From Iphione sp. A-MEVVRFRX5 (lineage: Eukaryota), in NCBI GenBank assembly GCA_976226885.1, contig OZ320319.1, forward strand, positions 59,582,001 to 59,646,000: 64,000 nt of DNA. The letters are read 5' to 3'. This document shows positions 4,913 through 59,600 of this stretch, piece by piece. A program made the translations under genes and the position numbers. Numbering within the stretch: the first letter of the stretch is position 1; every line of letters starts with the position of its first letter. A model generated the notes under the pieces. It saw nothing but the letters and a program-made list of their open reading frames with translations, ran no database searches and was not told the origin of the DNA.

Positions 4913-4918
4913 AGTGAA

Positions 4919-4990
4919 GTCTCTATGGTCAAGTGGGTTAGAGTGCCGACACCCCTAGGCAGAACACATCTGCATGGGTTCAAGTCCCCT
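4919..4990 (+). mobile_element. tRNA-derived SINE head (Pol III A and B boxes)
   Basis: A box TGGTCAAGTGG 4926-4936; B box GGTTCAAGTCC 4977-4987; no convincing cloverleaf. Confidence 0.65.
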
Positions 4991-7300: not shown

Positions 7301-8089
7301 ATGTCAGTCGGGAAGGACATTAATTGTGAGAGTAGGGTCAACTATGGGCAAAAAATCACGTGGCAGTGCTATTTGTCTGAGATCCCCCAAAGAAGAATCC
7401 CTTTATATTTTCATAACTGTGGGAAAGTACTATTGTGCACGTGAAGTATTCACCTGTTTTATGTTCTACTTATTCATTTCATGTACGATTCAAGGGCCAA
7501 TGGTTCTGCATAATTTTAAGGCGAATCGTATTTTGTATATGACGTCTACATCGGGGATTATTCAGAGGCTGTTCATATTTGTATATGAGAAAACATGATG
7601 CAATTACCTTTAGTTGCACTATGCTAAGATTTATCACATTTGCTTTGATTTGGGGAATACGTATCTACACTGGAGGCCATTTATACTGTGAAATATGACC
7701 TGTTGGTTAGGAACCATACTCATTTCAACTAAACCTCGGTAGTTCTGTGTCAGGAAGTAAAAGAAGAACTGTAAAAAATTGAGCTATTACAGAACAAATA
7801 TGAAGCATTCCCGCAGACGGGCCGCGGTGTACTGGCAGCCAAATGATCTCCTTTTTCGTGTCCCTGTATTGGAAAATGCCAGGATATGGAAGACAATTAT
7901 CACAAATCAAAATCGATTAATGGATGATTTACCGAATACCTATACTTACAAATGATAAATAAAATAAAATATTGAGCACTGGTGCGATATGAAGTATATG
8001 AATGAAACAAAAACAATGCAGTGGAGGGGACCAGGTCCTCCGCAAAAAAGCAGCTTATAACCTGCACTGGCATGCCAAATAATGCTGAC

Positions 8090-8608
8090 CTGTGACTTTA
8101 CACTGTAGAATGATTGTACTGCCTTCCCTGACGGAAACTGGCTTTGGAGGTTCTAAAATCGTCGGCCGTCCAGGCAACTTGTTATCATGGATCCTCTCCG
8201 TTTCAGACTGTGATGCTCCAGCAGTTATCTCCGGTAAATCTGTCAGAACCTCTTCAAGATCAGCTTTAGAAGTTTGATGGAGTGTTGCATGAGACTCTTC
8301 AGGTTGAGAAGTCACAGCTTCTTGGTCAAAAACAGGGACACTCTCTTTATGTGACATGCTGGATACTTTAGCTGGTCTGGGCTCATCTGTGGATGCCTTG
8401 ATGACTACCGGGACCAGGGCAGTGGCCGTTCCGCATGGGTTGGAAACGTGTAGTGTGTATTCCCCTGCATCTGTGATCTCTGCTTTCCGGATCTCAAAGA
8501 TGTAGAGGTCTTCTTCCAAATCCCAGTTCAGGAAAATACGTTTGTCCTTCTTGGACATCATCAGGCGGCGGTCTTCCTTGTACCAGGCAATCTCGGGCGG
8601 TGGGTGAC
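8090..8608 (-). CDS. Ig cassette exon (519 nt); last exon found, next exon must lie left of the window
   Basis: (G)HPPPEIAWYK...IILQCKVT-G|GTCAGC; no Ig C-part exon seen in 1-8089. Confidence 0.88.
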
Positions 8609-11600
8609 CTATAGGTTTGGTAAAGGAGGCAGGTGTCACCCAGTTATCCCTACATCCTTATTGTAGCGAATCCCCAGGACTGGATAGGAAATATTTATTC
8701 CATCCATTAAATTGAACTGTCGATAGACGTATTTGATTTTCCATACCATTAGCTGAGCATTGCAGGTAACTGAACTCTTTACTCACAAGTCTGGCCACTT
8801 TAAATTTGAATTGCACTTAACTTCAAATGCCTATTAAAGATTATCTGTGGTTTTAAAAGTACTTAAGCAAAAGCACATTAGAAGATATTCATATATGTCA
8901 GTATACGAACGAATGATCGCTTTATAATACAATATTACTATTTCAGAATCAAGACGGCAGTATATTCATCTCCTAGTACTTAGTTATATGATCATACAGA
9001 AGTGGCTCCCTCTAGTTTCTCGAACAAACGACATATATCCTGCTAAGTCTCTTTCAGGCTAATATATAGTACTTTCCTTCTATCTCAAACCTTGTTTTTA
9101 TCTATGTATTCAAACTTATTAGAAACTAGGCTTTTACATTTCTTGTACGAAATGTGGAGACATCCGAGATACAAAAGTTACCAAGATTGCTTCATGTTAA
9201 AATTGACTCAGTCGACATTTGGGGAAAGGGACAGCTCCACATAACACATCAATAAAAACAAAAGAACAAAACAAGAAAAACACTAAGTTGAAAACAAACG
9301 TTCCTCCAATATCTCAGTCAGATCAACTAGGAAAATTTTTGGAATTACAATTTCCATATGTAACATCATATTTAGGGAATTTTTTACACAAGACTTCTTC
9401 TGTACAATTGATACCAATCATGTATTCATACGCAAGGGATAAATACCTCTTGCATGAAATACGAGATACCTGACTATGTATTTTAAATGCGTTTAGGTAA
9501 TCGGTAACAGAGTAGTAAAATGATACGAGAAAGTTATTACTATAAAATATTGTGATAAATTGTGGTTATACGGTCAGGTAAGTCCAAAGCAATATCAAAA
9601 TATGTTAGAACGGAACAGACTCGGTTTCAACTGCACATTCTATAAGTAAGATAACGAAAAACAATTTAGTATAACGTAAATGAATATTTTGGTATGTAAA
9701 GTAAATATTTCATTCAAACAACTTTACGGGATTTGAACATATAAAAGCAACTCCGTCAAACCGTCAGTCTGGCACGTCACACCGTGCCTTGATGGGTTAG
9801 GACTTCAAATTTTAGGAGTTAAGATGTTGACTGAATGATGTCTCCACAATCCTTTTAATCCTATGTAAACACATACCCATAAATGAACTACCGACTTTCT
9901 ACATCTAAGATTTGACATTAGAATGATTTCAGCTTCAACTGAGCAACAGGCTACCTATATGGGTAAGCTTATTAATTCTACGCTCCCCAAGTTCCCCAAC
10001 AGTGCAAGAATGCAGAACTGTTAAAAGCTTTTGTGAAAAGCAAGCTTCTTTGAGATGCCAGCCCTGATGCGATTGGCAGGAAACAAGAATGTGTTATGCT
10101 CATGCCAGCTGACCTGAGATCTTGCAGGTGATTCTGACCAGGCCGCCTTGTAAAATGGCTACTGGCTCTGGAGGTATGACAATCTTGGGCGCTTCCCAAC
10201 CCAAGTACTTGATTCCTTTCTTTGGTTCTGACGCCACCTCCCAGACTTTCACTTTCAGTTCTGAGGTGTCCTCAGTAGTCAGGTATTTAGGTTCTTTGCT
10301 TTTTGCAATTCCTTTCTGAACTTCAGACTTCTTGCTGCAAAGCTCCTCCAAAACTGTGGTGAAGGGTTCTTTTTTGCCTGTCTTGGCTTTCTTTTCGGTA
10401 CGAGTCATCGCAGGTTGGACTTCCTCCTTCAGTGATTCCCCTTGATTATTAGAGGGTATGATCACTTTAAAACTTCTGGAAGATTGGCCTTCGTCGGTGG
10501 TTGCTCTGACTGTGTACTCACCACAATCTTGTTCACATGAATTAGCAATTTCCATGGAATAAATCCCGTCTCCATCATCGCAGTCGAAGGCCAACCGGTT
10601 TCCGAAGGATCCGCTTGAAAGTGGCTCTTGATTATCTCCCTTGAACCATGTGACCGCCGGTTGAGAAGATGCTGCCAGTTTAAATTTAGTCATATTTCAC
10701 CAGTACTCATTACCTTAAATTTCGTAACAAAAATTAGAACCACTTAGGGGAAAATCGAATGTTTCGTGGATCAAATTACATGGTCTTAAATGATATTGAC
10801 AAACATAGCATACATTTACCGAAGATTTTACTTTTTATGAAACAAACACTTCCAACCTGTAAGAAAACATATATTAACAGCAACGTGCAATAAGTGGCAA
10901 GGAGGAACAAGCAGCTAAATAAAACAAAGGGGCTATACAGAATGTAATTCTCGTCGAACATTCTGAAAAGGATAACCTTCAAGTTCAATAAGAAACAAAA
11001 GCAATACGCTTAGAACATGTGACAATGCATGTTTGTTGCATATTAACTAGTGAAATTCGGAGAAGGATTCTACTGGTACATAACAGACAATAGTAAATGA
11101 TGATAATATGCATGCTGAAATGAGATAAAGGGGCTGCTAGGGGAGCTGATGTTTAGGGAGTGAAGCAACAACAAATATTGACAAATAAGCCGAGAAAGGA
11201 AATAACATCAAACAATAATGCAGGCAATATGCAAGGTTTGAGATCCCAACCTGTAATCTTGCATTTAAGACGAATAACTCCGCCTTCGGAGACTGTGACT
11301 GGTTCTGGCGCAATTTCTATCACGGGAACCAGTTCCTCTGTCTTTTTCTTTGGTGTCGGGGGTACTAGGTCAGGCTGCGTGGGTATACTGGCAACATCTT
11401 GAACAACGGGTTCCTCAAGAATTACTCCTGATGCATGGATGGGCGAATCTACCGATGGCTTTTGTTGTGAAATTTCGAAAGAAGCCTCTTCCTCGACATA
11501 GGCTGCTTCCTTGTGGACAATATCTCCACTAATGGTGACTACCTCTTCACGTTGTGAACTAACCTCTCTGGTAACAGTAGTGTCCTCCTTCTGTTTCTGT

Positions 11601-14600
11601 TTCATTAAAAGATCTCCGCTAACAGTAACAGACTCATCTGTTCTTGAGCGTTTCTTCTTTGACTTTAATCTCCCTACTTCATCGACTTCGTCTGGTCCAT
11701 CCAACAGTAGCTCACCACTCACTGTTACTGACTCATCAGTGCGCCTCAATTTTCTCAGGGCAGCTGCATGATCTATTTCATCAAGATCTCTATCATCAGT
11801 AATAGTAACTGATTCCTCCATGGATTGGCTTACTTTCTTTGCTACCTCATCAGCATCTTTGATTTGAAAATCTCCAGCTGCACCTTCTACCTCATCAAGA
11901 TCCTTCTGGATTATATCACCAGTGATGGTAACTGATTCCTCCATTGAAGATTTGATTTCCTTTGTCACCTCATCATCATCTTTGATCAGAAGATCTCCAG
12001 TGACAGTCACTGACTCATCTGCACTACTTATCTTTTTTAGGGCAGCAGCATGTTCCAATTTATCATGATCTTTCTGGATAATATCATTAGTGATAGTAAA
12101 GGATTCCTCAGTTGATGACTTGATTTTCTTCATCACCTCATCATCACCTTTGATCTGAAGATCTCCAGTGACAGTCACAGAATCAACTGCACTACTTATC
12201 TTTTTTATGGCAGCAGCACTTTCTACTTCATCATGATCTTTCTGGATAATATCACCAGTGATAGCAAAGGATTCCTCAGTTGATGACTTGATTTTCCTTG
12301 TCACCTCATCATCATCTTTGATCAGAAGATCTCCAGTGATGGTCACAGAATCATCTGCACTACTTATCTGTTTTAGGGCAGCAGCACTTTCCACTTCATC
12401 GTGATCTTTCTGGATAATATCACCAGTGATGGTAAAGGATTCCTCAGTTGATGACTTGATTTTCTTTGTCACCTCATCATCATCTTTGATCAGAAGATCT
12501 CCAGTGATGGTCACAGAATCATCTGCACTACTTATTTCTTTTAGGGCAGCAGCACTTTCTACTTCATCAAGATTTTTCTGAAGAATATCACCTGAGATGG
12601 TAACAGATTCTGCTGTGGATGATTTGATTTTCTTTGTCACTCCTTCAGTATCTTTCATAATAAGATCCCCAGTAACTGTCACTGACTCATCTGTGCGTTT
12701 TAACCTTTGTAGGGCAGCAGCACTTTCTGTTTCATCAAGATCTTTCTGTATGACATTACCAGTGATGGTAACTGACTCTTCAGTAGAAGATTCTACTTTC
12801 TTTGTCACTTTATGACTGTCTTTGGTGAGGATGTCTCCCGTTACAGTTACAGATTCTTCTGTGTGGCATTTCTTTTTAGATACAATGTTATCTATCTCCT
12901 CACTCATCCGCCGCTCAAGTGTAGCAGTCGTACTGTCTGACTCTTCTCTGCTTGGCGTTACTTTCTTTGCTACTGACCCGATAGCTTCATCTACAGAGGA
13001 TGAACTGTCTTTCCTCTTGACAAGCTTGCCATCAATCAATGAAAAGGAGGACTTTCTCTCGGGTGGTTTGGAGATTGGCTTAAACACCATTACATTGACG
13101 ACTACTGATATACCACCTATATCATTGAAGGCAACCATGGTGTATTCTCCGGCATCTTCAATTTTGGCATCGAGAATCTCGAGGAAATGCATGTCTTCTG
13201 GTTTATCGTAATCAACAGAGACTCTTGAGTCAGGCTCACCGGTCTTTAGTTGGGTATCTCCTTTGAACCATTCGACCTCAGGTTTAGGATCACCTGTTGG
13301 AAAACAAAATGTCGAGGATTAAGAGAGTGCATCAAGAGTAAAAAGAGGAATTAACTAACTGCTCTGAATTTTTATAGCACGGTTAACATTTAAATTTGAG
13401 TAAATTACAATAGCCCAAAACTGACTCTTCAAAAAGATGTTAGGGCCATCAATATATTTTGCACTATAACTATAATCAATAAATATTAACACTATCCATT
13501 TGGTACGTGGTCACGCCTCTTTATGTATGTATTCCTGTACAAATAATGCAAGGAGGTAGCTGCATGTGTTTGACTTATACTAGACATGGAATTCTGTTTG
13601 TATGCAGTCTGAAAAGAATAGGTACCTTTTCGGTTTGTCAAAAAAACTGTCAACAATGGTGTTAAAAGTGGTTCCTGACCTGCAACGCATCCGAAGAGGA
13701 AAATCGGTTTCCCTGCGTCTACGTAAACGGATTTTGGTGGAATGACGATCTCAGGGGATCCTTCGGTGTGTTCTATATCCCCTGGAGTTCCACTGCCAGA
13801 TGCTGGTTTCGGAGGCTTTGGTCTTTCGGACATTGAGGGTTCCGTGCCAGCTTGATCTGCTGGAGGTTCCTTGGCTTTACGGTCCGGTTGGCCTGTCACT
13901 ACCACCCGAACAGTAACAGACATGCTTCCATGGATGTTCTCAGCCTTGATGCTATATTCACCAGTGTCGCTCTCCTCGGCATTGTGGATGATAAGGATAT
14001 AGAGGTTGTTCTCTGCATCGCACTCTATTTCTATACGGGTGTCAAACTTATCACTAAGTGGGGTATCCTCTCTGAGCCAGGTGACCTCGGGTACTGGCTC
14101 ACCTGGGAGTGCAGAAAATACACCGACGGGACATAGATGAAGCACAGATCCACAACACAAATACATGTAGTACTTATCAACGTAACGTAATATTAGACAA
14201 ATAACTTAATTATCAATGAAAATAGCTACAGGACACTGAATATCTAGGAAGTGGTTCTATTTTTATCGGTATTCTCTTGATATTTTATAGATGTAAGTTC
14301 ATAGATGTTAGTTGTTTAAGCTGCAAATGAAGCTGAAAGTGATATAGATGCATCTAAAGATATGTAACATATTAGAGCAAGACACAGGACATGCAAAGAA
14401 AACATTGACGCCGAAATAATGTAATAACACACCAATGTATTATAACTAGAGCATTACAACAGCTTGGTGCAATTGTCTTTCATGTATAAAGCTCCTGGTT
14501 TACCAAGAAACATTTCAACAATCCTGGGGAAAATGTCCGGACTTCAACAGTCTCAAAAGTGATAACGAAAAGACCAGTTTGTTTCAAAAGACTACCCGGA

Positions 14601-17600
14601 AAAGCTCTATTCCAAGCATCGTTTCTTCCTTGGCAATGAAAGTGTCCATTAGTCCTTGGAGGGAGTGCTGCAAATCGTAAGCGAATTTTAGACCGGAAAG
14701 ACCTTCAGCAACATTACAATTATGCTATTGCCCACACAAAACCTTGTCTATGAACGTAGGTACACGTTGTCAGTTCGGCAATATTTCCCACTTAAGTCAA
14801 CTCAACGACGCATCTCAGAGAGGGGGCTCCTGGCTGGGGTATATATGTATATAAATGAACAGTTCACACTATAATGTATGTAGATTCATAAAGTCCATTC
14901 ACGATTAACTGAACTTGGATCCAAACTTCATCGCGCCACGGATGTCAGAGAACATGGGGTCCGACAGCAGCCGAGATGAAGAGCTTGAGCTGCTGGAAGA
15001 GCTACTGCTTTGGACAACACGTCTCTCATAAGAACCAGATGAAGATGATCCAGAGCCAACCGTAACACTGACGGTCACGCTGGTGCTTCCCTTATCATTC
15101 TCGGCGACAGCTTTGTATTCACCGGCATCCTCCTCGGTAGCATCCCGGATTTCCAAGAACTGGATGTCGGTCTTCAGGTCCCAGTCAACCCGAATACGCT
15201 TGTCCCACTTTCGAGGTTTGATTCGTTTGCCATCTTTGTACCAGATCACGTCTGGCTCGGGATCACCTGAGGATGAAGGATACAAGAACGTGTTAGAAAT
15301 CGCCAGGCGTTTTATGTTGCATGCGATTTTCTAACATTTGGCAGATGAATAAGTCTCTTTTATACTCCTATATTTAGTGTAATTGAATATATTATGCAAA
15401 TACATGTATGTATTGTATATCGCTTGTCAGATTTGTAATGTACCCTACATTTGAGGAATGGCCATGAAATGAGAATGCTGGAACGCAAAGGGACATAGTA
15501 ATGGAATGTATATAATACGTGAGGATAACATTTGTATTGAATGGCAATAGTGGGACATTTCTAAACACAGACAAATATGGCAGTCGCAAACCACGCAAAA
15601 AGGGGAAATATATGTTAGGAGCTTTTTTAGGAACCAAACATAAAAACATTAGCGGAGAGACAAAAACTAAACAAGTGGTTAGTGGAAAAACAGAATACAA
15701 AGAACCATGATTTTGACAGTTTTCCAATGAAAGTAAAGCCATGTTTAAAGGTACATAATAGAGTTTTCAAGCAGAAAGGGATAACAGATGGAATAATATT
15801 CTGGACAACGTATGAAATGGAAACAATACGAATGTAATCAACAAGTGCTTAGCAGGTGCTGCTCATAAGACAAAAAAGCATTTTAAACGTATTTTAATGT
15901 GCCTGGTAATTATAAGAAGCATTTATGCGGGACTATTTTAACTGTGTGGGAATTGTGGAAGACGCGTTTCCAAGCTTTCAGTGACCTGACCTTCAGTACT
16001 ACATGTCAATCGGATGGTTTCACCAACTTGCGCTGAAACCGGTTGCGGAGAAGTGGTAAATACTGGGGAGCCTTTGCGCCTGGTAGAGCTTTGCATTTGT
16101 CTCGTCTGAACTGATTCAGTCCCCAAGCTTCCTAGGTCAAAGCCAGCTCCAAGGTCACGCATTACTGATGAGGCACTCATATCCTGGCCAACGGAAAGGC
16201 GAAGGTCATCACCTCCTTCAAGGTCAAACTTTGTAGATTTTATATGCACTTTGGCCCCAGTGAACGGGAAGTCTGGAAACTCTGACGCAGCTTCTGAGAG
16301 TGTCTGAAACTGTTTTTGATCTTCCATCCTGAGGGGGCCTCCACCAGAATCAATACTAATACTAACGGTGCGACGCACCCTACCGCATTCATTCTCTGCT
16401 ATGACGGTATAATCTCCGGAATCATCAGAGGTGCTATCGCGGATGGTGAGAACATGCATCCCACTGGATGATAAAAAGTCTACTGTCATGCGTTTGTCCC
16501 ACAAATCTCCAGTTATTGCCTCATTGTCCTTCAGCCAAGTAACAGTTGGTTCTGGTTGACCTACACAGCCAATAGGCAGTGAAAACAAACATACAAAGGG
16601 GCTTGAGTGATGGAAAAGAGATTTAGACCTTTGGAAGAATTTCTCAACTGGTTACAATGTTAGTTTTTGTTCTGAAAATATTTCCTTACTTATATTTTTA
16701 TAATCTGCACATTGGCTTGGGAACACATATGGAAGAAAATTTGAACTAAATAAATAATAAATCTTATGCTTTATCTTTCATCACTGGGAACTAGGTTGTC
16801 AACATTTTGCATGTACCTGTAACTCGGCACGTCAGTCTCACAGGCTCTCCCGCCTTGACAACCTCAGGCTCAGGGCTTACTTCAAAGTGAGGGGGATAGG
16901 AGTCACCGTCAGTTGTTGACAATTGTCTGACAGCAGATTTGGCTGAGGCAAGCTCTCTTGCGATGATTTCTTGGACAGACATTTCCGCTGCGTCATCTGG
17001 TTTTGTTGAGTGGGAGGTTTCTTGTATTGTTATGCCAACTGGTTCTGAGTCACCACTAACGTGGCGTTCTGAAGACCGCTCTTCAATGACAACTTGCATA
17101 ACTTCATCAGTGACCACTACATCTACAGTTACAAGTAGGATGCCTCGAGAATTTTCTGCTTGCACTGAGTACTTCCCACTATCTATGATGGAGGCGTTCT
17201 CTATGATAAGGCTCGACATCCTGGAGGACTCCTCGTACACTCTACATATTCGGGCATCTCTATTGTCAAAGGCTATGGGTGTCTGATCTTTGTACCAGGT
17301 CAAGGTCGGTTCAGGGTCACCTGTAGGCAAACACATTATCAATTTAAATACTCCATTAAATCATGGGTTTTAGCGGTATCTTAAATTTTAATTTCATTGC
17401 GTTTTCCTCATATTATACAAGTTTATCGATATTTGAAATCGATTAGGTTATATTATTAATTCAATAAAGGTTAAAATCATGAATTTGTCATGCCGTGGTA
17501 TCAACGATGAAGTAGGGAGGAGGACTGGAAAAAGAATCTCATTCTCAAAGAACCGTTCGATCAATACGTGTCGATAGGGATGCATGTTGACATATCCAAT

Positions 17601-20600
17601 TTTCCTGGAAATGTGAATGCAGGAAAATCATCAACCATACTATGAGTGCTTTGCAATCACTATGAACGATGTATAGTAAACTGCATCAGCTGCAACAATT
17701 CCCATGTCATATAGCATCAACATCCGCCAACCACAAAATGTTGTGGTTTTAAAGGATTTGTTTGTTTTTTTATATAAACCAGCTTGAACGCGAATTATCA
17801 ACAGTAGTCAGCATACAAGTCAGAAACACCTAACATGCCATAATGAGCTAGTTGTTGACATTCGGTTCGATGAGTAAACGTTACTAAAAAGACACTGAAG
17901 AGCCAGCTTGGTGAACAGAAGCTGGTTTTCAGTGCCATCATCCAAAATGCGATTCTGAAGTTATATATAGAGTATCTAACCTGAAACTTTACAGCTGAGC
18001 ATTATAACTTCGCCTGGGACTACTACCACTGGGTCAGGGTAAATGTCCATGACAGGTGCTCCTTCGGGCAATTCTGAGGAGGCGGCACCTTCAGTGACCT
18101 CACTGGTCGACTCTGTAGTCATCTGAGATAATACTTCACTATCCTCCCCTTTGGGGTTCCGAGAGGGATTCCCAGTAGGATTCCCAGTAGGACTATCAGT
18201 AGGATTCCGAGTAAGACTATCAGTAGGATTATCGTTAGGATTATCAGTAGGATTCCCAGTAGGACTATCAGTAGGATTACCAGAAGGACTATCAGTAGAA
18301 GTATCCTTAGGATTATCAGTAGGATTGCCAGTATTTACATCCTCATGAATACTGGTCACTCCATCTGTTTTTGATTCGGTTGCCTTCAAAGCAGAACTAG
18401 CAACAATTTGCTCATCTGAGACTGATTCAGTGGCAGTTGAAGTCTGCTCCTCTTCCACTTTAGTCTCCCTGGATAGAATTTCTTTGATGGTCTCGCGTGG
18501 ATCAATCTCCACTTCAGTCAACTTCAGAATCTCGGTTGGCGTATAATGACCAACATAGACATTTACCGTGTAACTGGCAGTTCCCAGTGAGTTTTCAGCC
18601 TTCACTGTATATTCACCAGCATCTTTCTTTGTACATTTCATGATATTCAAGATGTATTTCTCTTCTTGTTTCATGACTCTAATCCTTCGATCCCATTTCT
18701 TTGGCCTAATGGGTTCGTTGTTATGATACCACGTTACCGTGGGCTCTGGGAAAGATGACACTCTGCATGAGAGACGTATAGCTTTATCGTCTTCCACTAC
18801 AACAGGATCTGGCGGTTGAAGAAACTTTGGGGGAGAATCCTCCCTTTCAACGGCAGTTGCAAGTTTGCTTGTTTCAGAGTCGGGGACCTTCTCTTCCTTT
18901 GGCAGATCTTCAATCATGACATTGACGGTATGACTTATTCCTCCATAGTAGTTGTCAAACTGAACAGTATATTCTCCTCCATCTGCGTGTGTGGCTTTGC
19001 TGATATTCATGATGAAGTAGTCTGTTTTCATAAACCTGATGCGCCGATCCCATTTCTTGGGTCTAATAGGGTCGTCTCCTTTGAACCAAAACAGCTCCTT
19101 CGGCTCTGGATCAGCAGTGACTTTGCATGCGAGACGTATAGTATCTCCAATCTTTACAGTTACAGGTTTAGGAAGCTCCACAAATCGGGGGGCCTTCGGA
19201 TGATCTGATTCCAGTTTTCGTTCAGATGCCTTCGAAAACCCTGTAGACACTCGTACAATGTCATCCTCTTCTGCAACAGCCTCTACCATCTTGTTCTCGT
19301 CTAGAACTTCTGTTGTTTCCACCATCTGCTTTGGGAGGTCCTCTGTCTTGATAGGGATTTCATCTGTCCTGATAGATACCTCCTCGGGAATTTCTTCCTC
19401 TACCAACTCTTCCTCCTTGGTGATACTCATGATACTTTCTCTTCCCACAATGGTCTCTGAAGTTGACGCACCTTGCTCCTCCATCTGGGCCGCTGGTTGC
19501 TCCATGCCTACTAAGACTGTAACAATGAATGAGGCTCTTCCGAAACTGTTCTCAGCGAGGACTTTATACTCTCCCGAATCTTCAGAAGTCGAGTTCTTTA
19601 TTATCAAGCTGTACATATCCGTGGCAATGTCCCATTTAACTTCGGTTCGCTTATCCCACTTCTTTGGTTTGATGAGCATTTCATCCTTGTACCATGTGAT
19701 TTCTGCCTCTGGTTTAGACGAAACTCCACATGTTAAGTTGATTGTATCACCAATATCAATGCTTGCAGAGCTTGGCGGTTTTACGAAAACCGGTGCCATA
19801 GGCTCTTCTTCTGCTTCTGCTATGCTAGGTGCTTCTGCTCCATGCTTCCCTCCCGTCAGAAAATCTGTCTCTGATGCGTCAACTGCTACATGCTCAATAA
19901 CCTCATCGGAAAAGGTAACAAATTTCTTCGATTTATCATCCTCTGCAGAGATTTCTTGAACAACTTCGTGTGTTTCTTCAACTTTTCCTCCTGTCAGTTC
20001 AGGGGAACTTGCCTTTACTTCTGGGAAGCCAACTAAAACAGATACAGTATGTGTGGCGGTTCCGCATGTATTCGATGCAAGGATCTTATACTCCCCAGAA
20101 TCATCAGGAGTACACTCGTGGATAGTTAGGCGGTAAGTGTCATCAGCAATACTCCATTTCACCTCAATTCTTTTCTCCCACTTCTTCGGGCGAATGGCTT
20201 TCTCTCCTTTGTACCATGCTACATCTGGTTCAGGATCACCAGCTACCTTGCAGACGAGTGAAGCACTTTGTCCTGGTTCCACTATAACATCATTGGGTAC
20301 CTCGGTGAAGATTGGTTTTCCATCCTCCTCCTCAGATGATGATGATGTTTCTTCCGATTCTTCTATTGACACAGTCTTAAACCCTGTTACAGTTTCTTCT
20401 GTTTCTTCAAACTGAAAGGTCATATCCTTCGGTGGTGATTCAACAGAGGAGACCGTTTCATCTTTTAACTCCTCCTCATGTTTCTCGTCAACCTCCTCTA
20501 CGGCTTTACTTATACTGTTCTCATCTGTTTCTACATCCAGTCTCTTTGTGCCCTTTTCTTCACACTTTGTTTTTTCGTCGGTTTTCTCTTCTGTTATTTC

Positions 20601-47600: not shown

Positions 47601-50600
47601 TCACTGGATGATTCCTCAGAGGAAGATTTCTCACTCAATGGCCGAGTTTTTAGTTCCTTGCTATCCTCTTTAATTATAACTGTCTGTATTTCACTAACAT
47701 CTGTCTGATCTTCGGTTGTGATAGTCTTAACGTCTTGGATATCTGTGACAGCAAACCCTGAAGTTTCTTCCAACATCACTTCAGCAGCTGTGTGTTCAAC
47801 TTTATCTGGAACAATTGCAGTGAAACTAACTTCTTCTTTCCCTTCCTTTACCTCTGGTGCATCTTCAGAAACCTCCTTCACTGTCCGATCAACAACTTTC
47901 CCATCTACAAGAGTCTCCTCAATGACTTGAGTGGTACGTTTGCTTTCAACAGTCTTTGTTATTATCTCAGCACCCTCGGGCTTACCGACAAGGACAGTAA
48001 TGGTGTACTTGAATCTTCCAAATTTGTTCTCAGCAATAACTCTGTATTCTCCAGCATCATCCGTGGTAGCATCAAGTATAGTTAAGATATAAAGGTTCTG
48101 ACCTTGATCGTAGTGGGGAACCACACGCTTGTTATCCTTAGTTGCTTTAATTGGTTTATCAGATTTATACCAGGTAACTTCAGGGGAAGGCACACCTAAA
48201 ATGTCATTAATATGAAAAAATATTATTGCATCAATCTAAGCTCTTGCTTTTTGGTTCCATATTAGTTTAGGATAAAGATAATACTTGTACAATTATCTAC
48301 GAAAGGAATTTCATTTAATATACATATACATGAAAAAATGTACCAGCAGCGTCGGTCAAACGTGATAATACTGATGTCACACAGAAAACGAAGCATTCCG
48401 AAAAAAATAAATCCAAAACATATGCTATGAAAAATGAAGTAAAATCAAACTTCTCAAAAGCAAAACTTCTACAAAAAAAGGATCTAGACCTGGTACTACT
48501 GAAGAAATGAAGTAAAACGAATGAGCTACAAAAAAGACCAAAGATAGAATGTTCGACCTTGTTTGAAATATAAAGCCAAAACATATAAACCAACGTTGAG
48601 GCCATTCCATAAATCATGTTGCCAACCAATAACTGTAGAAATATCACACCTGTAACTTTGCAGGTTAGGGTTATTGTCTCCCCAATATCCACAAGAACTG
48701 GTTCTGGAGGCTGTGAAAACTTGGGGGGCTCTCCTGTTTCATCGTCGCTCTCCTCCACTGATGATGACTCTTCACTTGATGATTCTTCAGGAGATGAGGT
48801 AACAACCTTCTTCTTTTGGGTAACTTCAGCAACCTTTTTCTCAACCATATCTTCTTTCTGCACCGTAACATCTTTTGAAACTCCCCCAATTATCATGACA
48901 TCTTCAGGAGTTTCACTCACTTCGGAGAGAATGGTAAAAGTCACCTCGGAATCTGCTGTAACATCTTTGGGTTTGGTATATCTTTGCTCGACAGTTTCCT
49001 CAGTGGGTACATCATCCGAAACCTCTTCCTCAATAACTCTTTGAATAACATTCCCATCAACAACAACCTCCTCCACGACTTTCTTGGTTCTCTTGCTTTC
49101 CACAGTTTTCTTGATTAACTCTACTCCTTCAGGTTTACCGACCAAAACAGTTACTGTGAATTTGAAACTACCACAAGTATTCTCTGCAACAACTGTATAG
49201 TCAGCTGCATCGTCCGATGTTGCATCCAAGATTACTAGTATGTGAAGATTTTGTCGCTGGTCATAATGTGGTTTAATACGAGGTTCATCATCCTTGGCCA
49301 CTAATGGTGTCCCAGCTTTAAACCATGTCACCTTCGGGGTTGGTTCACCTAAATGGGCGGCATTATATTATGTGAAAAGGCTGATATTTATATTCATAAA
49401 TATAATCATTTGTTATTTGGATTTGGATTATTCAAATGATTTTTTGCCTTTATACAAAATATTACACTGCATAGGAAAAATATCCAATTATCCTCCGGGG
49501 TAATGATATAACAATTTATAAACGGAGGAGCATTTCTACTGATTGATACGAACATTTTTTTCGACATATCATGAGACACAGTAAGTGATGCAGCTTTAGC
49601 AATGAAAATAATAGAACACAACATAATCAGTGAGTGTTACAAATAACGGCAAAATTCTCACAGGGGGCTGAGAGTTGGCCCCTTTCTTCCTGGAATAAAA
49701 CATGATTAGCGTCTCATGCATGATATGAGCAGCGAAAAAGAAGAGAAAGAAACAAGATGTGTCTGAAATGAATACGGAATACAAAAGCCATTTCACATAT
49801 TGCTAAGAAGCAGGGGGTTTGAACATTGAAGTAAGGGTGACTCTCTCTTTGCCAACCTGTGACTTGGCAGGTCAGTTTGATGGTCTCGCCAACGTCTACC
49901 AGTACTGGTTCCGGAGGCTGGGTGAACTTTGGTGCCTGGCCTTCACTGCTCTCCTCCATTACAACAGTCGATTTCACATCCGGAGTGACCATACTGTCAG
50001 CAACTGTTACTTTTGTCACCTGGGCAGAATCTTCTTGTGATACATCAGTTTTCACTCTCACCACATCTGAGGCACTGCTTTCGGCAGTGACTGTCTTTGA
50101 GAAGGATTGTTCTGTTGCTTCTCCAATCTCTCCTGACTCACCAAGAGTTAATACAAATGCTGACTCAATATCTTCTTTGGCTTTACCAGATACAGCCTCA
50201 ATAATGGAGAGGCTTTCTGCAGTTTGCTGATCACCTACAGTCATCTGCATGTGAACATCAGCATCTGATTTACTAACTACAGCAGCCTCTTGTTCTTTCA
50301 TTGTTGTTTCAGTGGGCTCTTGTGTGGTCATGATAGTCTCTGAAGTGATGGCTTTTACAGTTTCGATATCACCAGTTATTACCTCTTTTTCTGTCACTGT
50401 TTCAGAAGTAGTACTTTCAGCAGTGACTGTCTTTGAGTAGGATTGTTCTGTTGCTTCTCCAATCTCTCCTGACTCACCAAGAGTTAATACAAATGCTGAC
50501 TCAATATCCTCTTTTGTTTTGCCAGATACAGGCTCAATAATTGAGAGGCTTTCTGTAGTTTGCTGATCACCTACAGTCATCTGCATTTGAACATTAGCAT

Positions 50601-53600
50601 CTGATTTACTAACTACAGCAGTCTCTGGTTCTTTCATTGTTGTTTCAGTGGGCTCTTGTGTGGTCATGACAGTCTCTGAAGTGATGGCTTTTACAGTTTC
50701 AATATCACCAGTTGTTACCTCTTTTTCTGTCACTGTTTCAGAAGTAGTACTTTCAGCAGTGACTGTCTTTGAGTAGGATTGTTCTGTTGCTTCTCCAACC
50801 TCTCCTGACTCACCAAGAGTTAATACAAATGCTGACTCAATATCCTCTTTCGTTTTGCCAGATACAGGCTCAATAATTGAGAGGCTTTCTGTAGTTTGCT
50901 GATCACCTACAGTCATCTGCATTTGAACATCAGCATCTGATTTACTAACTACAGCAGCCTCTGGTTCTTTCATTGTTGTTTCAATGGGCTCTTGTGTGGT
51001 CATGACAGTCTCTGAAGTGATGGCTTTTACAGTTTCAATATCACCAGCTGTTACCTCTTTTTCTGTCACTGTTTCAGAAGTAGTACTTTCAGCAGTGACT
51101 GTTTTTGAGTAGGATTGTTCTGTTGCTTCTCCAATTTCTCCTGACTCACCAAGAGTTATTACAAAAGCAGACTCAACATCTTCCTTTGACTTGGTGGTTT
51201 CAGCAACCAAGACAGTTGCTTCAGAAGGCTGATCCTCCACAGGTATCTGCATTTGGGTATCAGTGACTACTTCACTAGTGGCAACGGGGTGTTGTTTAAC
51301 AGTTGCTTCGGAAGGTTCTTGTGTCATGAACACAGTCTCTGTAGTGCTTGCAGTGCCACTTTCAACATCTGTTGTGGATTTTGTTATCTTTGCTGTCTCT
51401 GCATCCACTGAAGTGACACTCACAGTTTCATCCAGGGTGATGGCCCCGCTGATTTCTGTAGATTCCTCTGGAGACGTCTTCACGGTAATGACACTACCCT
51501 GATAGTCACTATTCCCAACATCTTCCGTAACTTCCTCTTTCACAGTAGTGCCTACAACCTTTCCATCAACCACCGTCTCCTCTATCACTTTGGTAGTACG
51601 TTTGCCTTGGATAGTCTTTGTTATAATCTCGGCGCCCTCAGGTTTACCCACAAGGACTGTCACAGTGAATTTGAATCTGCCATATTTGTTTTCAGCAACA
51701 ACTGCATAGTCTCCGGCATCTTCCTCAGTGGCATCAATAATGATGAAGATGTGCATGTCATCACTTTCATCATACTCAACCTTGATTCGATCCCCAGTTT
51801 CCATTAGAACATCCTGCCTGTACCATTTCACTTGGGGCTTTGGAAAACCTGGAGGGTCATTTTGGAGGAAAACCAAACGGACGTATCAACAATGCTACCT
51901 CTGGTACCTTTGCATTTGGTACCTACTAAAGTATGATATATGTGTATTGGATATGAACATATATATCATTTTCGAATGAGATAGAAGAATGGGATAGTCA
52001 CCAAACAGTGAAACAGTCGATGAATTTATGCTAGTAAACTAGATACCTGCTTTGGAAATGTTGATGTACAAAAAAAGAAAGTGATGCTACCAAAACTATA
52101 TTTCAAATTTAAATATACGAAATAAAGGATGAAATGATCACATGAGTCTACTCGTAACGTTTCTCAAAAGTATATAACGGAACAGAATTTCAGAAAGAAA
52201 ATTGATAGACGTGAATAGAAATGTAGAAAAACATAAAGTAGTAACACTTACCTTCCACTTTGCAAGTCAGTTTGATGGTCTCTCCAAAGTCAACCAGTAT
52301 GGGTTCAGGGGGTTGGGTGAATTTTGGCGGCTGACCTTCTTCTACCGGTTCTGCCTCAGTGGTAATCGTCATTGTAGCTGCTGCTGTGTCAGATACCTCA
52401 GTTTTTGAAGTGACAGATCCTACAGCTTGAACAGGTGCTGCCTCGGTGACCTTCATTTCCTCCACTACCATCTGTGGTTCGTCTTCGAAGACCTCTCTTG
52501 TGACAGTTCTTTCAACTTCACCATCTACAACTGTTTCCTCAACAACAGTGACAGTCCGCTTGCTTTCAGTGGTTTTCACAATTTCAGCACCTTCTGGCTT
52601 ACCAACAAGTACCGTTACAGAGAACCTGAAACTACCAAATTTGTTCTCTGCAACTACAGTGTACTTGCCGGCGTCTTCCGCTGTAGCATCCCGAATGATT
52701 AAAACATTGAGGTCTCGCTTCATGTCCCAGTGTATTTTAACTCTCTTGTCGCTGGGTTTGGGTTTCAGCTGGACGTCCTCCTTGAACCATGTCACCTCAG
52801 GCTCGGGGTCACCTTGAAAATGCAGTAATTCGTTATATATATACAAGACCCGTCTCATTCATGGGAAAGCTGTTCTATTCTATTCGTCGATAACAGTTAA
52901 GAGAAAATACATCGATAGCTTAATCTAGCTACTCGAAGCTAATTTGAAACATGTGTCTGATAAAAAGGAGTGAAAGACATTTGAAGATTATTTCTAGATT
53001 TTGAAAAATACCGGTGCCCTTTACCCGCCTAAGCGATTATGTGTTCGCGAGATAATGAAGAAGCAAGAGGGGACGCAAAAGTGAGCTTCCCTATAAATAT
53101 TCCACCTGCTAACGGCATTGTTTACCTGTGACTCGGCAGGTAAGTTCTATCGTCTCGCCAAAGTCGACTAACATGGCCTCTGGTGGTTGCTCGAACTTAG
53201 GAGCAGCTCCGGCTTCCTCCTGCACTTCAACCACCTGAACGGGCTGTTCCTCAGCCGGCTTCTTGGTAACCACTTTTGTCTCTGGCTTGTCCTCTGACGT
53301 TTCCTCTTTGACGACGCGCTCGACAACTTGGCCACCAACCACTGTTTCCTCCACGACAGTCACTTTGCTTTTCGTCTCGACCGTCTTGATCTCTGCTCCC
53401 TCAGGCTTACCGACAAGAACAGTCACTGTGAAGCGGAAACTTCCAAAGTCATTCTCTGCTACCACCGTGTACTCCCCTGCATCCTCGGCCTTGGCGTCTT
53501 TGATGATTAGGAGGTTAAGATCCTGCGCCATATCCCAGTCGATCTTTAAGCGAGGATTTCTCTTGGAAACCTTGAGTTTTGTGTCGCCCTTGTACCATGT

Positions 53601-56600
53601 GACCTCTGGCTCTGGCTCACCTGTTCGTTGAAAATCATATTACAGACGTATTAATAATGTGCTTATTCTTGACTAGGGTTCCTAATTTGAATTCCTTATA
53701 AAGCAGTAAGCAATTTATATTATACCTAGGCCCAGACGGGAATATTTGAACCTAAAGTGTATATATGCTAGGAATTAATTTAATATTGGATAAGTATGCG
53801 AATCATTAATCATAATGATTTTCTGACCAAAATGCAAATGTCACTCAATATCAGGCATCTACTGAAGTCTGAAGAACCAGTCAACTAGCAAACATGACAT
53901 GCGATTCAATAATTCATAACAGAAACAATGTCAACTAGCTGAAGAGATGACTACTCATCTATTGAAAGTAACCAACAGTACGTAATAAACAGCAGCAGAT
54001 AAAATGCGCAGTGTAGGCAGAAACAATGATAAGCAGATGCAAACAGTCGCGCAGACTCCAAATAAAATGTTTCTTCTATCGGCCAAAACTATGGAGGAAA
54101 TGTTTGAATCCAGTGGGCAGTATAACTGAAAGCTGATAAAATAAAAGTTCACAGCAAGCGCACAACATGATCGCGCATATGTAGATATATACATTTTGCT
54201 TTATTCAACCCTGGAACGAAGGTTGTATATAATGAACCAGGCAGGCAGTGTTAAGAGCATATGACCGCCAGTTACTTGCGTACAAATGCAAAACGTTCCC
54301 ATGCTCATTCAGTGCTGGATAATCGCATATTCTTGCAACAGTAACAGTTGAATATGTTTCAACAGATGTATCCAGCATTCAAATCTGACCTGATACTTGG
54401 CAAACCAAGCGAATCTCTTCTCCGAAGTCTACAAGTACAGGCTCCGGGCGACGAACAAACTTGGGTGCCTTGCCTGCCTCCTCTTCTTCGGAAGAAGACT
54501 CTTCTTCAGAAGAGGTTTCCTCCGGTTCGGAACCTTCAATAGATACAATTGTCAAACCACTAGCGATTTGGGTCACATCCTTTTGTACTCCAGTCAACAC
54601 AGCTGTTTCTGTAACCTGGGACTCCTTCGTGTCAATACTTATAGTTGTAGCAGTTTCGGCAACTTCAGTGGTTTCTTCGGTTGTCTGTGCACTAACTTTT
54701 TCACTCACATCCGCCACTTCCATAATGTCTGATACATTAATAGCTTTTGGCTCTGGTTCTTTTGCAGCTTCAGCTTCTGGCTTCTTAATAGATTCAGGCT
54801 CTGGTTTCTTAACATCTTCAACCTCTGGTTTCTTGGTTACCTCAGGTTCTGGTTCCTTCTGTTCTTTTGGTTCTTTTGTAACATCAGGTTCTACTTTCTT
54901 TGCAACTTCTGGTTTTGGTGCTCCCTTTACTTCAGGCTCTGGTTCCTTGGAGACTTCAGGCTCTGGTTTCTTGGCAACATCAGGCTCTGGTTCCTTCTTT
55001 ATCTCTGGTTCCTTAGTAACTTTAGGCTCTGGTTTCTTGGCAACATCAGGCTCTGGTTCCTTCTTTATGTCTGGTTCCTTAACAACTTCAGGCTCTGGTT
55101 TCTTGGCAACTTCAGGCTCTACCTCCTTTTTAACCTCTGGTTCTTTAACAACTTCAGGCTCTGGTTCCATCTTTAGCCCTGGTTCTTTAACAACTTCAGG
55201 CTCTGGTTTCTTGGTAACATCAGGCTCTACCTCCTTCTTTACCTCTGGTTCCTTAACAACTTCAGGCTCTGGTTTCTTAGCAACTTCAGGCTCTACCTCC
55301 TTCTTGACCTCTGGTTCTCTAACAACTTCAGGCTCTGTTTCCATCTTTAGCCCTGGTTCCTTAACAACTTCAGGCTCTGGTTTCTTGGTAACATCAGGCT
55401 CTACCTCCTTCTTAACCTCTGGTTCTCTAACAACTTCAGGCTCTGGTTTCCTGGCGACTTCAGGCTCTAACTCCTCCTTAACCTCTGGTTCCTTAACAAC
55501 TTCAGCCTTAGCTTTTTTGGCAACTTCAGGCTCTACCTCCTTCTTCACTTCTGGTTCCTTAATATCTTCAGGTTTTGGTTTTTTAACAACTTCAGGCTCT
55601 GGTTCCTTCTTAGCTACTGGTTCTTTAATAACTTTAGGCTCTGGTTCCTTAACTACTTCAGGTTGTGGCTCCTTCTCTACTTCTGGTTCCTTGATAACTT
55701 CAGGCTCTGGTTTCTTAGCAATCTCTGGCTCTGGCTCCTGAGCCACTTCAGGTTTGGGTTCCTTCTGTACCTCTGGTTCCATAACAGCAACAGGCTCTTC
55801 CCCAGGTTCCTTAGAAACTTGAGCCTCTGGTTTCCTAGCTATTTCTGGCTGTTGTTCCTTAGCAACTGCTGGCTTTTCTTCCTTGGCAGCCTCAGTCTCT
55901 GACTCCTTCCTGACCTCTGGTTCCTTAACAGCTTCAGGTTCTGTTTTCTCAGGAACTTCAGATGCTGGTTTTCTTGGTGTTTCAGCCTCTGGCCCCTTAG
56001 TTACCTCATCTTTCGGCTCCTGAGGAACCTCAGGCTTTGGTTTCTGCACAACTTCTGGTTCTGGTTCATTCTTGACTTTAGGCTCTACTTCTTCAGTAAC
56101 CTTCGGCACTGCTTTTTTCACAACTTCAGGTTCTTTGGGGATTTCAGGCTCTGCCTTCTTGGGAGTTTCTAGTTCTTTTGGGACTTCTGGTTTGGTTTGC
56201 TCTTTGAGCTCTAGGGTCTGAGACAGTGCAACGTCTTCAACTGTCTTCTTTCTGCGTGACATCCCTACATCTACATCAAAGTTACAATCAAATACTCCAT
56301 GTTCATTGATAGCTTTGACGGTGTACTCCCCAGCATCCTCCTCGGTGGCATTGTTAATTTCCAGTAAGTATACGTCTGTCTTCATATCCCAGATAATTTT
56401 AATTCGCTTGTCAGATCTTTTCACCTTGATAAGTTTACCGTCCTTATACCACTCTACCTCTGGCTCTGGTTCACCTGTTGAGGTCAAATTCAGATAATGT
56501 GTAAACATTCTTTCAAGCAATATACAACTATGTTGGATTAAATGTTCATTATTCAAAAGACAGTCGAGTATCTCCAAAGATGCAATAAACAGGTAAGTGG

Positions 56601-59600
56601 AGGTACATTCAATTCTGCAAAAACGTTTTGCTCCTATTGCTTGTACAAAGGTAAAGCAATAGTGGGTACTGAATAAAAGTTAATCAGCAAATTTTTATCA
56701 GTGTGATTTCATTAACATTGGACATTATCAATAGCTGCCTACTGTCATGCAGCTTCGTAGTATTAAATATCATACACAGCTGGTGTTTGGGTGCTAGTCA
56801 GATTATTTCCTTGTAAACTTTGTAATGTTAAATATCATACACAGCATCTATTGTTTTCATTTGATTGAACATATCTTTTAAATGTGTCTGTTGGGGTGCT
56901 AGTCAAAGCTCAATCAACAAGGGGATTATTTCCTTGTAAACTGTCCATGTCACAAGCCTTCACAGTAGCAAGGAAATGTCTCAAGTTAACAACGCAACAG
57001 GTTTCTTGAGGAATATTTCTTCCTAACCTGACACTTTACAGCGCAGGGTGATGAGGTGGCCAACTTCCACCGAGACAGCTTGTTGGTCTACAACAATGTG
57101 TGGTGAACCATCGTCTACTGAACTTGATGCACTATCACTGGGATATTCATGACCTCTGCTTTCTATGGGTTGCTTTTCTCCTTGCGGCAGTTGTCCTGTA
57201 ACTGCCTTAGGTTCGTCTACATGCTCTTTCAAAGGTTCTGATGATGGTTTTGGTGATAGCTCAAAGGGTGCTACTTGAACTGGTTCCGAAATTGATTCCT
57301 TGGTATCTATTAATGAAGATGCTGTGACAGATTCTACTACTTTTGCAGGCGTTATTACAGTTTCTTGCACCACCTTTGAAACTCCTTTCTTTTCTTCTCT
57401 TAGAGCTTCAAAACCACCAACACGGACTTGCACCTCTTTGACGGCTGAACCATGAACATTGTTTGCTTCAACTTTGTATATTCCTGCATCCTCAGACGTA
57501 GCATTACGCACAGTGAGGACATATTCATCAGTGCTTATTGACCAGTCGATTTTTATACGCTTCGACCATCTGGACATCTTGAGCTGTTCATCGCCTTTGT
57601 ACCATTTGATATCTGGGTCGGGTTCACCTAGTCCAAATGGTTACAAGAAATGTTAGGATTTTGGAGATGTAGCAATCATAGCTACTATAGTATCTGTACG
57701 TGACAAAGTGAAAAATACGTATAACATAACAGCATGGATAACCATCATCAAGGATCGTACATGCATGAGGCAAATGTTCCAAACTCTCTCCTAGGTACCT
57801 GAATGCGCTGCTTCTTCATGCTCTTCACATCTACCCAGACAAAAAGATGCACATGAAAATAGCACACTAAAGTATTTCTACCTTTGTCTATGACATTCAA
57901 ATGTAAGGCCTGAAAATGAATACAAAAATAAGGACCTAAGGCTCTACATACCACACAATAAACCGGCAACTAAGGGTTCATAATTACTATGATAAACATA
58001 AGTTCGACGCCTATGGAGATCAAGCCTGAGCAAATGACTTATTCCTTGCCTTTCACTTTGTATGTGAGTCGAATTGTGTCACCCACATCGACAACCACTC
58101 CCTCCGGCTCCACCTCAAATACTGGGGCACCCGGTGCTGGCAAATTCTCTAGGTCAAGGTCATTTGGCTCTTGTGCCACAGCTTTATTGGTGGCTAACTT
58201 CTTATTATCATGGTGTCTTTTAGTGGGTTTCCTCTTTTTTTCCTCATCCGATGGCGTAGCCTTTCTTTTGCCTTTTCGGTGCTCATCGGTTTTACCGTAT
58301 GGAAGAGCTGAATCTGACAAGGCATCATCACTATATCCTGAAGAATCTGAATCCCATGGCTTGCCACCTGTCTTTAAACTCAAGATCTCTTTGATGGACT
58401 CATGCTGCTTGCGCTTCTTTTTCTTTTTCTTGCTTGACATATGCAAGTTATCATCTCCTGCCACGCTGCCTTCACTTGACCCCTCTTCGCCACTCCCGAG
58501 CCTGTCTCGAGTTTTGGCAGCAGGGGAGGAAAGACTGCGACTGTTCTCAGACTGAACCATGTCACTTCTCAAATCCATTCTATTATTTGCAGCCTTTTCA
58601 TCAACGTCGGTGTGTCTGTCAGCTTCACTTATTCTTGTATCTGGGGGTATATTATTTGTTTCAGGTACATTTCCACTCTGGCGAGCGTTTTTCTTTACAG
58701 AGAGATCATTAGTTCTGTCAGTTTGAGAGCTGTGTACATTTCGCAGATCTTTTATAGCTGTTATGCCTGTGTCTTCTTCAGTAGGGGTAGACATCAATAC
58801 TATCTCTACAGGAGCATTTGTTTGGAGATGCATGCCAACTGATTCTGATTGGCTCGGCGATGCTTCTGTTGGTACCTTGAAACTCTTTTTCGATGTATCA
58901 TCATAGAGAGGCGAGATGCCAGTATCAGTAGTAACAACCTTACCACCACATGTGGCTTGATTGTCCTGCGTGTTAGGCCAGCTCATATCCATCAGATTCT
59001 CAATTGATTTCGTATCAGAATCAGCCTCATTACCCGATGGCCACTTATTTAATTTCTGGATTGGATCGAAATCAGAGAGGTCGATCAGATCTTGGAAGGG
59101 TTCGATTTTACTCGAGTCTCTACTGAAAACAGTTTTAGATTGATCTGAATCAGGAACCTGCGCTGGTTGGTTTGAAGCAGGAGCATCAGTAAGAGGTTCT
59201 GTCGATTCTTTGGGAGCAGCACCAGTTTGAAGTTTATTAGAACTGGCGACAATCTCCAAGGAGGTTCCTTTAGGAATAATAGTTTCCGGGGACTCAAATG
59301 GCAGTACAGAGGAAGGCTCGACCTTGACCTTGACAGCACAGGCAACCTTGGCTTTTGGATTAGACGCAATAAGAGAATAGTAGCCGGAATCGGAGGGTTT
59401 AGCATCCAGAATCTCTAGAATATAGAGATCTTGCTGGCCAGCCATGTGGATCCGGACACGGGGGCAAGATTTGTCTGACTTGACCCTGACCCCATCCTTG
59501 AACCACCTGACCTTGAGACCGGGCTCATCTGTAAGGCAGAATCACATGACAAACCAAAGGGGGAATTATATCGGGAGCTGACATACAGCCTTTTCAAACA

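Follow-up and report, generated by a model that had tools for sequence, protein, structure and literature searches.

Immunoglobulin exons out of register with their domains form a tandem array in an obscurin/UNC-89-like gene of Iphione sp.

The locus and its exon array

The stretch of DNA described here (the window, 64,000 nucleotides) comes from Iphione sp. A-MEVVRFRX5 (assembly GCA_976226885.1, contig OZ320319.1, positions 59,582,001 to 59,646,000), and 100 kb on either side of it were examined as well. Its minus strand codes for a long array of exons with immunoglobulin (Ig) domains, which lies in a gene of ~165 kb on the same strand. Coordinates are those of the window throughout, negative values lying beyond its first letter, downstream in the gene.

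The array is built from one type of exon. Each begins with strands C to G of an Ig domain (the C-part), continues into an acidic linker of unique sequence and ends with strands A, A' and B of the next Ig domain (the N-part). The Ig portion at the exon start is ~68 residues long, opens with the motif G-[DE]-P-x-P-x-V-x-W-[YF]-K and covers positions 26-90 of the 90 positions of the Pfam I-set profile. The N-part of ~25-26 residues ends with P-x-F-x-x-P-P-E-P-x-x-V-D-x-G-E-T-I-x-L-x-C-x-V-x-G, and the N-parts are similar to each other, with a mean identity of 50%. Pfam mapping and the translations bear out the make-up of C-part, unique linker and N-part that an earlier note on this DNA had proposed.

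Between 59528 and 8090 the window holds 28 intact array exons; a recount and boundary checks agree with the earlier note in this number, in the divisibility of the lengths by 3 and in the phase of the bordering introns. The exons measure 423-6099 nucleotides (nt), with a median of 631, and are all multiples of 3 (28/28 in the window, 39/39 overall), while both introns bordering each exon are in phase 1 (28/28 and 39/39, correspondingly). The introns are 235-2690 nt long, with a median of 601. All 28 window exons have an AG acceptor and 27 have a GT donor. The remaining donor, that of exon 58050-59528, reads AAAG|GCAAGG (58044-58050) and probably belongs to a GC-AG intron; in phase and position it does not differ from the neighbouring GT donors.

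The array is entered through a mini-exon of 115 nt (59990-60104), which turns phase 0 of the FN3 region into phase 1 and provides the first N-part. Past the window, exons of the same type run from -12.5 kb to about -36 kb and include 11 strictly verified exons (one of 3993 nt) and ~5 irregular ones. The whole array has at least 39 verified exons, encoding ~12,000 residues. Its features in the window are as follows.

60328-63998, minus strand: FN3 exons upstream in the same gene, with an EEKKP repeat spacer and ordinary donors (purine at +3)
59990-60104, minus strand: entry mini-exon, 115 nt, phase 0 in and 1 out, first Ig N-part, ending in ...RLTCKVK + G|GTGAAT
58050-59528, minus strand: array exon 1, 1479 nt, split codon G|AT (Asp), C-part, 397-residue linker and N-part (Tyr replacing Cys), GC donor GCAAGG (probable)
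57028-57627, minus strand: array exon, 600 nt, phase 1-1, source of the N-part in the chimera prediction
54390-56474, minus strand: array exon, 2085 nt, true PEVK-like linker (E 26%, K 17%, P 16%, V 14%)
53126-53620, minus strand: array exon, 495 nt, C-part corresponding to I-set 26-90
52252-52812, minus strand: array exon, 561 nt
49857-51848, minus strand: array exon, 1992 nt, linker with ~3.5 tandem repeats of ~115 residues
48650-49348, minus strand: array exon, 699 nt
47470-48195, minus strand: array exon, 726 nt
46089-46868, minus strand: young six-copy array, copy 1, 780 nt, intact
44233-45012, minus strand: young six-copy array, copy 2, 780 nt, intact
41924-42686, minus strand: young six-copy array, copy 3, 763 nt, decayed
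40513-41292, minus strand: young six-copy array, copy 4, 780 nt, intact
39073-39855, minus strand: young six-copy array, copy 5, 783 nt, intact
37642-38419, minus strand: young six-copy array, copy 6, 778 nt, decayed
34289-34951, minus strand: array exon, 663 nt
33170-33754, minus strand: array exon, 585 nt
32175-32774, minus strand: array exon, 600 nt
31297-31884, minus strand: array exon, 588 nt, source of the C-part in the chimera prediction
30135-31061, minus strand: array exon, 927 nt
28974-29528, minus strand: array exon, 555 nt, C-part corresponding to I-set 26-90
26871-27626, minus strand: array exon, 756 nt
25910-26449, minus strand: array exon, 540 nt
24800-25297, minus strand: array exon, 498 nt
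17981-24079, minus strand: giant exon, 6099 nt, C-part first and N-part last, 8-9 unsplit Ig domains and linkers inside
16817-17320, minus strand: array exon, 504 nt
15991-16560, minus strand: array exon, 570 nt, N-part with two possible partner C-parts (15266 or 14102)
14905-15266, minus strand: irregular exon, C-part, Ser-rich tail and TAA, lacking an N-part
13680-14102, minus strand: array exon, 423 nt
11251-13293, minus strand: array exon, 2043 nt, linker of ~55-residue tandem repeats
10114-10671, minus strand: array exon, 558 nt, split codon G|CA (Ala)
8090-8608, minus strand: final array exon inside the window, 519 nt, followed by ~20.5 kb before the next C-part, which is beyond the window

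The ~20.5 kb that follow exon 8608-8090 (window 1-8089 and on to -12.5 kb) are devoid of array exons, and may represent a large intron containing a repeat or another element. The outermost part of the window (1-2300) is GC-rich (52%) and of low complexity, with poly-Q, poly-A and Gly-rich open frames on both strands.

Identity of the gene

The Ig exons run on along the same strand to within ~1 kb of an exon encoding an SH3 domain (SH3_2, 1.2e-8). It is followed by exon pieces that match RhoGEF/DH in Pfam at 8.2e-6 (26.5 bits in a single exon piece, slightly below the cut-off of 27.6) and at 0.012, and by a DH-associated PH domain of the SOS1/NGEF-like type (Pfam, 2.2e-12), so that SH3, RhoGEF and PH are found in this order on one strand between -39 and -47 kb. 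A genome-wide RhoGEF scan did not return this locus; the RhoGEF matches come from direct Pfam scans of the exon pieces. After the PH domain the gene contains Ig domains, FN3, further Ig domains, a kinase, another Ig domain and the catalytic core of a second kinase. The first kinase is supported by Pfam (Pkinase, 7e-10) and by exons found with tblastn from -66.5 to -71.7 kb, the second by a catalytic-loop exon at -79.1 kb found with tblastn only, and the Ig domain at -75 kb separates the two.

This domain order, including the two kinase cores, is collinear with that of an obscurin-like protein of 7608 residues. The top homologue among 1.84 billion representative sequences is annotated as 'Muscle M-line assembly protein unc-89' (E = 9e-196), and no close orthologue above 38% identity was found among them. 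The best architectural match is a 'titin-like' protein of Anneissia with 7754 residues and 22 long linkers. Judged by its predicted domains, the gene is obscurin/UNC-89-like, and the titin-like label of the earlier note is refuted by the SH3-DH-PH module and two kinases after the array and by the unc-89 top homologue. Titin/connectin proper was considered and rejected, as it calls for a single C-terminal kinase behind A-band super-repeats of Ig and FN3, and no RhoGEF cassette. PEVK-like spring segments are present but are not exclusive to titin.

Like members of the obscurin/UNC-89/SPEG family, the gene combines many I-set Ig domains in tandem and a few FN3 domains with the SH3-DH-PH module and with two C-terminal kinases, each preceded by Ig/FN3. 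One exon contains 10 stretches matching I-set (9e-194), and fn3 matches lie both upstream and downstream. At least 10 FN3/Ig exons are located upstream, and one Ig domain is found at about +84 kb. Two FN3 domains at 60328-61638 are separated by ~180 residues of EEKKPxxEEKP repeats, a PEVK-like spacer. The next genes downstream encode an EamA transporter and a TIR/Fz protein.

Position of the intron within the Ig domain

The AlphaFold2 model of an unsplit Ig domain from the 6.1-kb exon, with a predicted local distance difference test score (pLDDT) of 94.8, assigns residues 20-27 to strand B and residues 33-38 to strand C. The position at which the array domains are split corresponds to residue 28 of this model, the first residue of the B-C loop, and to I-set position 25/26. 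The earlier note described the split as one through a Gly at the same codon and likened it to the half-Ig exons of Dscam. The position and its phase hold for all exons, while the codon is Gly in 36 of 39, the others being Asp (G|AT) at 59528, Ala (G|CA) at 10671 and Ala (G|CT) in one downstream exon. The split is indeed within the domain but does not halve it, leaving 25 residues (A-A'-B) in the N-part and 65 (C-G) in the C-part. The 8-9 inner Ig domains of the giant exon have no intron.

In these unsplit domains the residue at the split position is A/A/G/A/G/S/A/S. As Gly is not conserved where the intron is absent, the apparently conserved Gly would at least partly reflect the G|G consensus of the splice junction. 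That all inner Ig domains lack the B-C-loop intron suggests a block-wide loss of introns, for example via a cDNA copy. Inside the giant exon (17981-24079), a series of Ig types (ADPEAD..., GDP..., ADPxPKELFW..., [GS]FPEP...) recurs as a two-fold super-repeat, and the C-terminal linker of this exon contains an NPTD/PT-type repeat (Pfam PF04886, 1.4e-5). The Ig domains of the same gene outside the array are encoded by single exons without the B-C-loop intron.

Giant-protein genes of Lingula and Tubulanus contain some introns at the identical Gly codon (VISG|KPEP, ECIVTG|NPTP, ECKVTG|FPTP), which indicates that the B-C-loop position is old. The same genes also have inter-domain introns and introns at other positions within the domain; the comparison used the X1 isoforms, and the genes proved to be paralogues with mixed intron positions. 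What is special in the Iphione array is that the B-C-loop intron is the sole position used, across ~47 consecutive domains. Within the range of the 'titin-like' gene of Tubulanus polymorphus (OZ123226.1), a called product of 3422 residues (24202-36212 of the extracted stretch) has no Pfam hit and probably represents a giant exon coding for a linker or spring, which the annotated isoform leaves out.

Frame logic and compatibility of Ig parts

Since the exons are all of phase 1-1 and all begin and end at one structural position, any run of them can be skipped in frame with a whole Ig domain rebuilt at the new junction, as the earlier note had argued. The compatibility of parts from non-adjacent exons was addressed by two-chain complex prediction, in which a divergent N-part (57029-57127) was paired with the C-part (31670-31885) of an exon 14 exons away. 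The pair is predicted to assemble with a score of 0.61, as opposed to 0.02 for the best control, with a partner pLDDT of 75 and at least 93% contact agreement between runs. The tightest predicted contacts involve strand B of the N-part and the pairing of A' with the last strand, which is the arrangement of an Ig sandwich. The score mark of this method is reached by 51 of 78 solved complexes and by 2 of 108 mismatched pairs, with the caveat that common folds and close relatives of the true partners pass easily. The prediction thus speaks for the compatibility of one pair, modelled as two chains, and not for folding in the cell.

Duplicated and decayed exons

In the six-copy family between 37.6 and 46.9 kb, the alignment extends across both splice sites and a short way into each intron, which indicates that the duplicating unit is an exon with its intron, and that C-part, linker and N-part are copied together. 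Across the array, the similarity of the N-parts follows that of the C-parts in the same exon with a rho of 0.37, and that of the C-parts in the same domain with a rho of 0.28 (Mantel-type test, both significant).

Two members of the family are decayed. The copy at 41924-42686 is 763 nt long (mod 3 = 1), contains 20 stops and has lost 12 nt in the N-part, while its AG acceptor and GTTAGA donor are intact. The copy at 37642-38419 is 778 nt long (mod 3 = 1) and meets its first in-frame stop at codon 20, and likewise keeps a consensus acceptor and the GTTAGA donor of the family. It follows that a productive mRNA must omit both, joining 44233 to 41292 and 39073 to 34951.

A third irregularity is exon 14905-15266, which ends in a stop codon. 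Having no N-part, it has to be bypassed by any mRNA that goes on, through a junction of 15991 to 14102. AATAAA is not found in the 800 nt after the stop, where only a TATAAA at 14289 is present. The exon represents an alternative last exon or else a relic; should it also be used to end transcripts, a single N-part would have a choice of two C-parts. As read from the genomic sequence, the two decayed copies and the stop-ended exon imply that hybrid Ig domains are already formed, and tolerated, at up to three junctions.

Linkers

The linkers range from 7 to 600 residues (45-600 in the intact exons of the window), are acidic (net charge -2 to -75) and rich in E, K, P, V, S and T, and are often internally repetitive. 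Several end in Ser/Glu clusters directly before the next Ig domain. Runs of the (S)n(E)n type, such as SSEESSSEESSSEESS, are located just upstream of many N-parts (40540-40640, 44260-44360, 46110-46210, 47500-47600, 48680-48760); they resemble casein-kinase-2-type phosphorylation clusters and could possibly act as a stiffness switch.

Some linkers are themselves tandem-repeat arrays, with ~55-residue units (ESVTITGD...KD.DEV...) in 11251-13293 and ~115-residue units in 49857-51848, while the linker of 54390-56474 consists of PEVK-like units of ~28 residues (EPEVxKEPEVKKE). The springs seem to grow by expansion of internal repeats. With Ig beads alternating with entropic springs, the region would be a titin-like elastic segment in an obscurin-type scaffold that bears RhoGEF and kinase modules.

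Origin of the array and alternative explanations

The uniform register of the array exons cannot be due to chance and points to descent from one duplicated exon unit. It is proposed that the central spring region of this giant obscurin/UNC-89-type muscle gene grew by repeated tandem duplication of a single unit, namely one exon with Ig strands C-G, a disordered acidic linker and Ig strands A, A' and B, plus its intron, which is in phase 1 and lies in the B-C loop. As the borders of such a unit are offset from those of the domain, every intron falls at the same codon and every exon is symmetric, and the uniform register would be a matter of inheritance and not of design. Gain, loss or skipping of a unit would remain in frame and regenerate a full Ig domain from the N-part and C-part of different units. 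Most exons would be constitutively spliced to give a chain of ~50 Ig domains with entropic-spring linkers between them, and modularity would act mainly in evolution, through exon birth and death. A few exons (42686-41924, 38419-37642 and 15266-14905) would be skipped or used as alternative ends, resulting in a small number of hybrid Ig domains. As a whole, this account of growth by exon-unit duplication, mostly constitutive splicing and few hybrid domains is considered probable, with considerable room left for others.

Several points weigh against it. Constitutive inclusion is an assumption, and so is the joining of the array and the SH3-kinase part in a single mRNA. The difference between the rho values of 0.37 and 0.28 is small, which makes them a weak test of the duplication unit. 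The array donors have the form (C/A)AG|GT[T/C]AG (e.g. 57027, 46088, 44232, 40512, 39072, 28973 and 17980); 31 of 39 carry a pyrimidine at +3, and weaker donors of this kind would fit regulated splicing. In non-array exons of the same gene the donors are GTGAGT, GTAAAT, GTACGT or GTGAGA, with a pyrimidine at +3 in 0 of 7 (Fisher p = 1e-4), a comparison that is only indicative as these seven were picked by the analyst from the ends of open frames and domains. Furthermore, 12 of the 39 array introns begin with G|GT TAG, so that intron retention leads to an in-frame stop immediately after the split codon. Finally, symmetric Ig exons of human OBSCN and TTN are skipped in development (PMC11871629), and the prior for some cassette use is therefore not low.

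The strongest competing explanation is a regulated cassette system, in which muscles skip different exon runs and the isoforms vary in length, linkers and hybrid Ig domains. Such a system would make use of the fact that all exons are frame-neutral and complete a domain, and it would fit the non-consensus donors specific to the array. The predicted assembly of one chimeric pair is in its favour too, although it shows compatibility with a very common fold, in which relatives of the true partner pass. Long exons and short introns favour the pairing of splice sites across introns, and hence constitutive splicing over cassette skipping, and this is the geometry of the array. Neither orphan N- or C-parts nor clusters of alternative half-exons were found in the introns of the window; a match to 'LQCSANG' at about 8745 was tried as an N-part and rejected. 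Duplication, moreover, fully explains the uniform register on which a cassette reading draws. The decayed exons, with splice sites still in place, show that skipping can be survived, and human OBSCN offers the precedent of phase 1-1 Ig exons skipped in development, with a switch of last exons (PMC11871629). A regulated cassette system is regarded as unlikely, though far from negligible. Slightly less likely still is its functional form, in which regulated skipping of exon runs would let muscles adjust how long and how stiff an obscurin-type filament is, each skip creating a hybrid Ig domain with A-A'-B from one unit and C-G from another.

An arrangement of two or more genes, in which the Ig-linker gene would end at the 14905 stop and the part from 14102 on (with SH3-DH-PH and the kinases) would be a separate unit or an isoform from an internal promoter, appears improbable. 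It is suggested by the in-frame stop and missing N-part at 14905, by an in-frame ATG that precedes the 14102 acceptor without interruption of the open frame, and by the internal promoters and alternative last exons known from obscurin/UNC-89 genes (PMC11871629; PMC3388081). However, a protein from 14102 would start with an orphan Ig C-part, no polyadenylation motif of the AATAAA type follows the stop within 800 nt, and an identical exon architecture continues unbroken on both sides. A decaying or non-functional locus, or an assembly artefact from collapsed or expanded repeats, could be read from the two decayed copies and the highly repetitive sequence but is very improbable indeed, given 39 exons open over ~12,000 codons (including those of 6.1 and 4.0 kb), paralogues too divergent for collapsed copies (mean identity 41-50%) and a window free of N.

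With growth by exon-unit duplication as the preferred explanation, the array demonstrates the propagation of one intron position ~47 times, and the unit that evolution duplicates, the back of one Ig domain, a spring and the front of the next, is also the one that splicing could remove. The array is a natural test of the interchangeability of Ig β-strands. Regulated skipping, if true, would constitute a new way to diversify protein surfaces, with isoforms differing in both springs and Ig surfaces, while without it the array remains a clear case of birth and death among exon units, with a frame of 12,000 residues kept intact.

Comparison with known systems

Giant elastic muscle proteins are the textbook case of mechanics tuned by the skipping of in-frame Ig and PEVK exons. 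To our knowledge, the exon equals the domain in every case described, and we know of no splice-generated chimeric-domain system in giant sarcomeric proteins. The literature search found no description of this exon register or of the structure of a lophotrochozoan obscurin gene.

In nematode and fly UNC-89 the SH3-DH-PH module is N-terminal, while in vertebrate obscurin it is located, together with two kinases, after the Ig array. The gene from Iphione has the order of vertebrate obscurin, with SH3-DH-PH and kinases from -39 kb to -79 kb, which bears on the question of which obscurin/UNC-89 arrangement is ancestral. Its SH3 domain is 42-44% identical to that of nematode UNC-89, while the identity of the Ig arrays is only ~30%. 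The array also suggests that a lophotrochozoan obscurin carries titin-like springs.

Ig domains encoded by two exons are known from NCAM and perlecan, and are found in the Lingula 'titin homolog' and Tubulanus 'titin-like' genes, the latter two sharing with the array some introns at the identical Gly codon after strand B. Exon boundaries inside Ig domains also occur in the exon 4 and 6 clusters of Dscam1 (PMC8042237). There, each cluster offers alternatives for half of one domain, of which exactly one is chosen, whereas each exon of the array completes one domain and begins another, in an intracellular, muscle-type protein. The Dscam-type half-exon shuffling invoked in the earlier note is not supported by the window introns, in which neither clusters of mutually exclusive half-Ig exons nor orphan halves were found. 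Kettin/Sallimus is, like the product of the array, a muscle protein with Ig domains separated by linkers, but its spacers are uniform, at ~35 residues, and its 35 modules are encoded by only 12 exons (PMC3207145), as opposed to unique linkers of 7-600 residues and one exon per module.

A close parallel is provided by the Ig cassettes of human OBSCN and TTN, which are likewise runs of phase 1-1 exons with lengths in multiples of 3, skipped in frame, in giant sarcomeric proteins; for OBSCN, developmentally regulated skipping and alternative last exons are documented (PMC11871629). In these genes one exon encodes one complete Ig domain and skipping drops whole domains (PMC11871629). The exons of the array run instead from B-C loop to B-C loop, shifted by 25 residues and carrying a long unique linker, and every junction is within a domain, so that any skip would create a hybrid Ig domain. 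The array is thus a new version of the known in-frame Ig cassette architecture of titin and obscurin.

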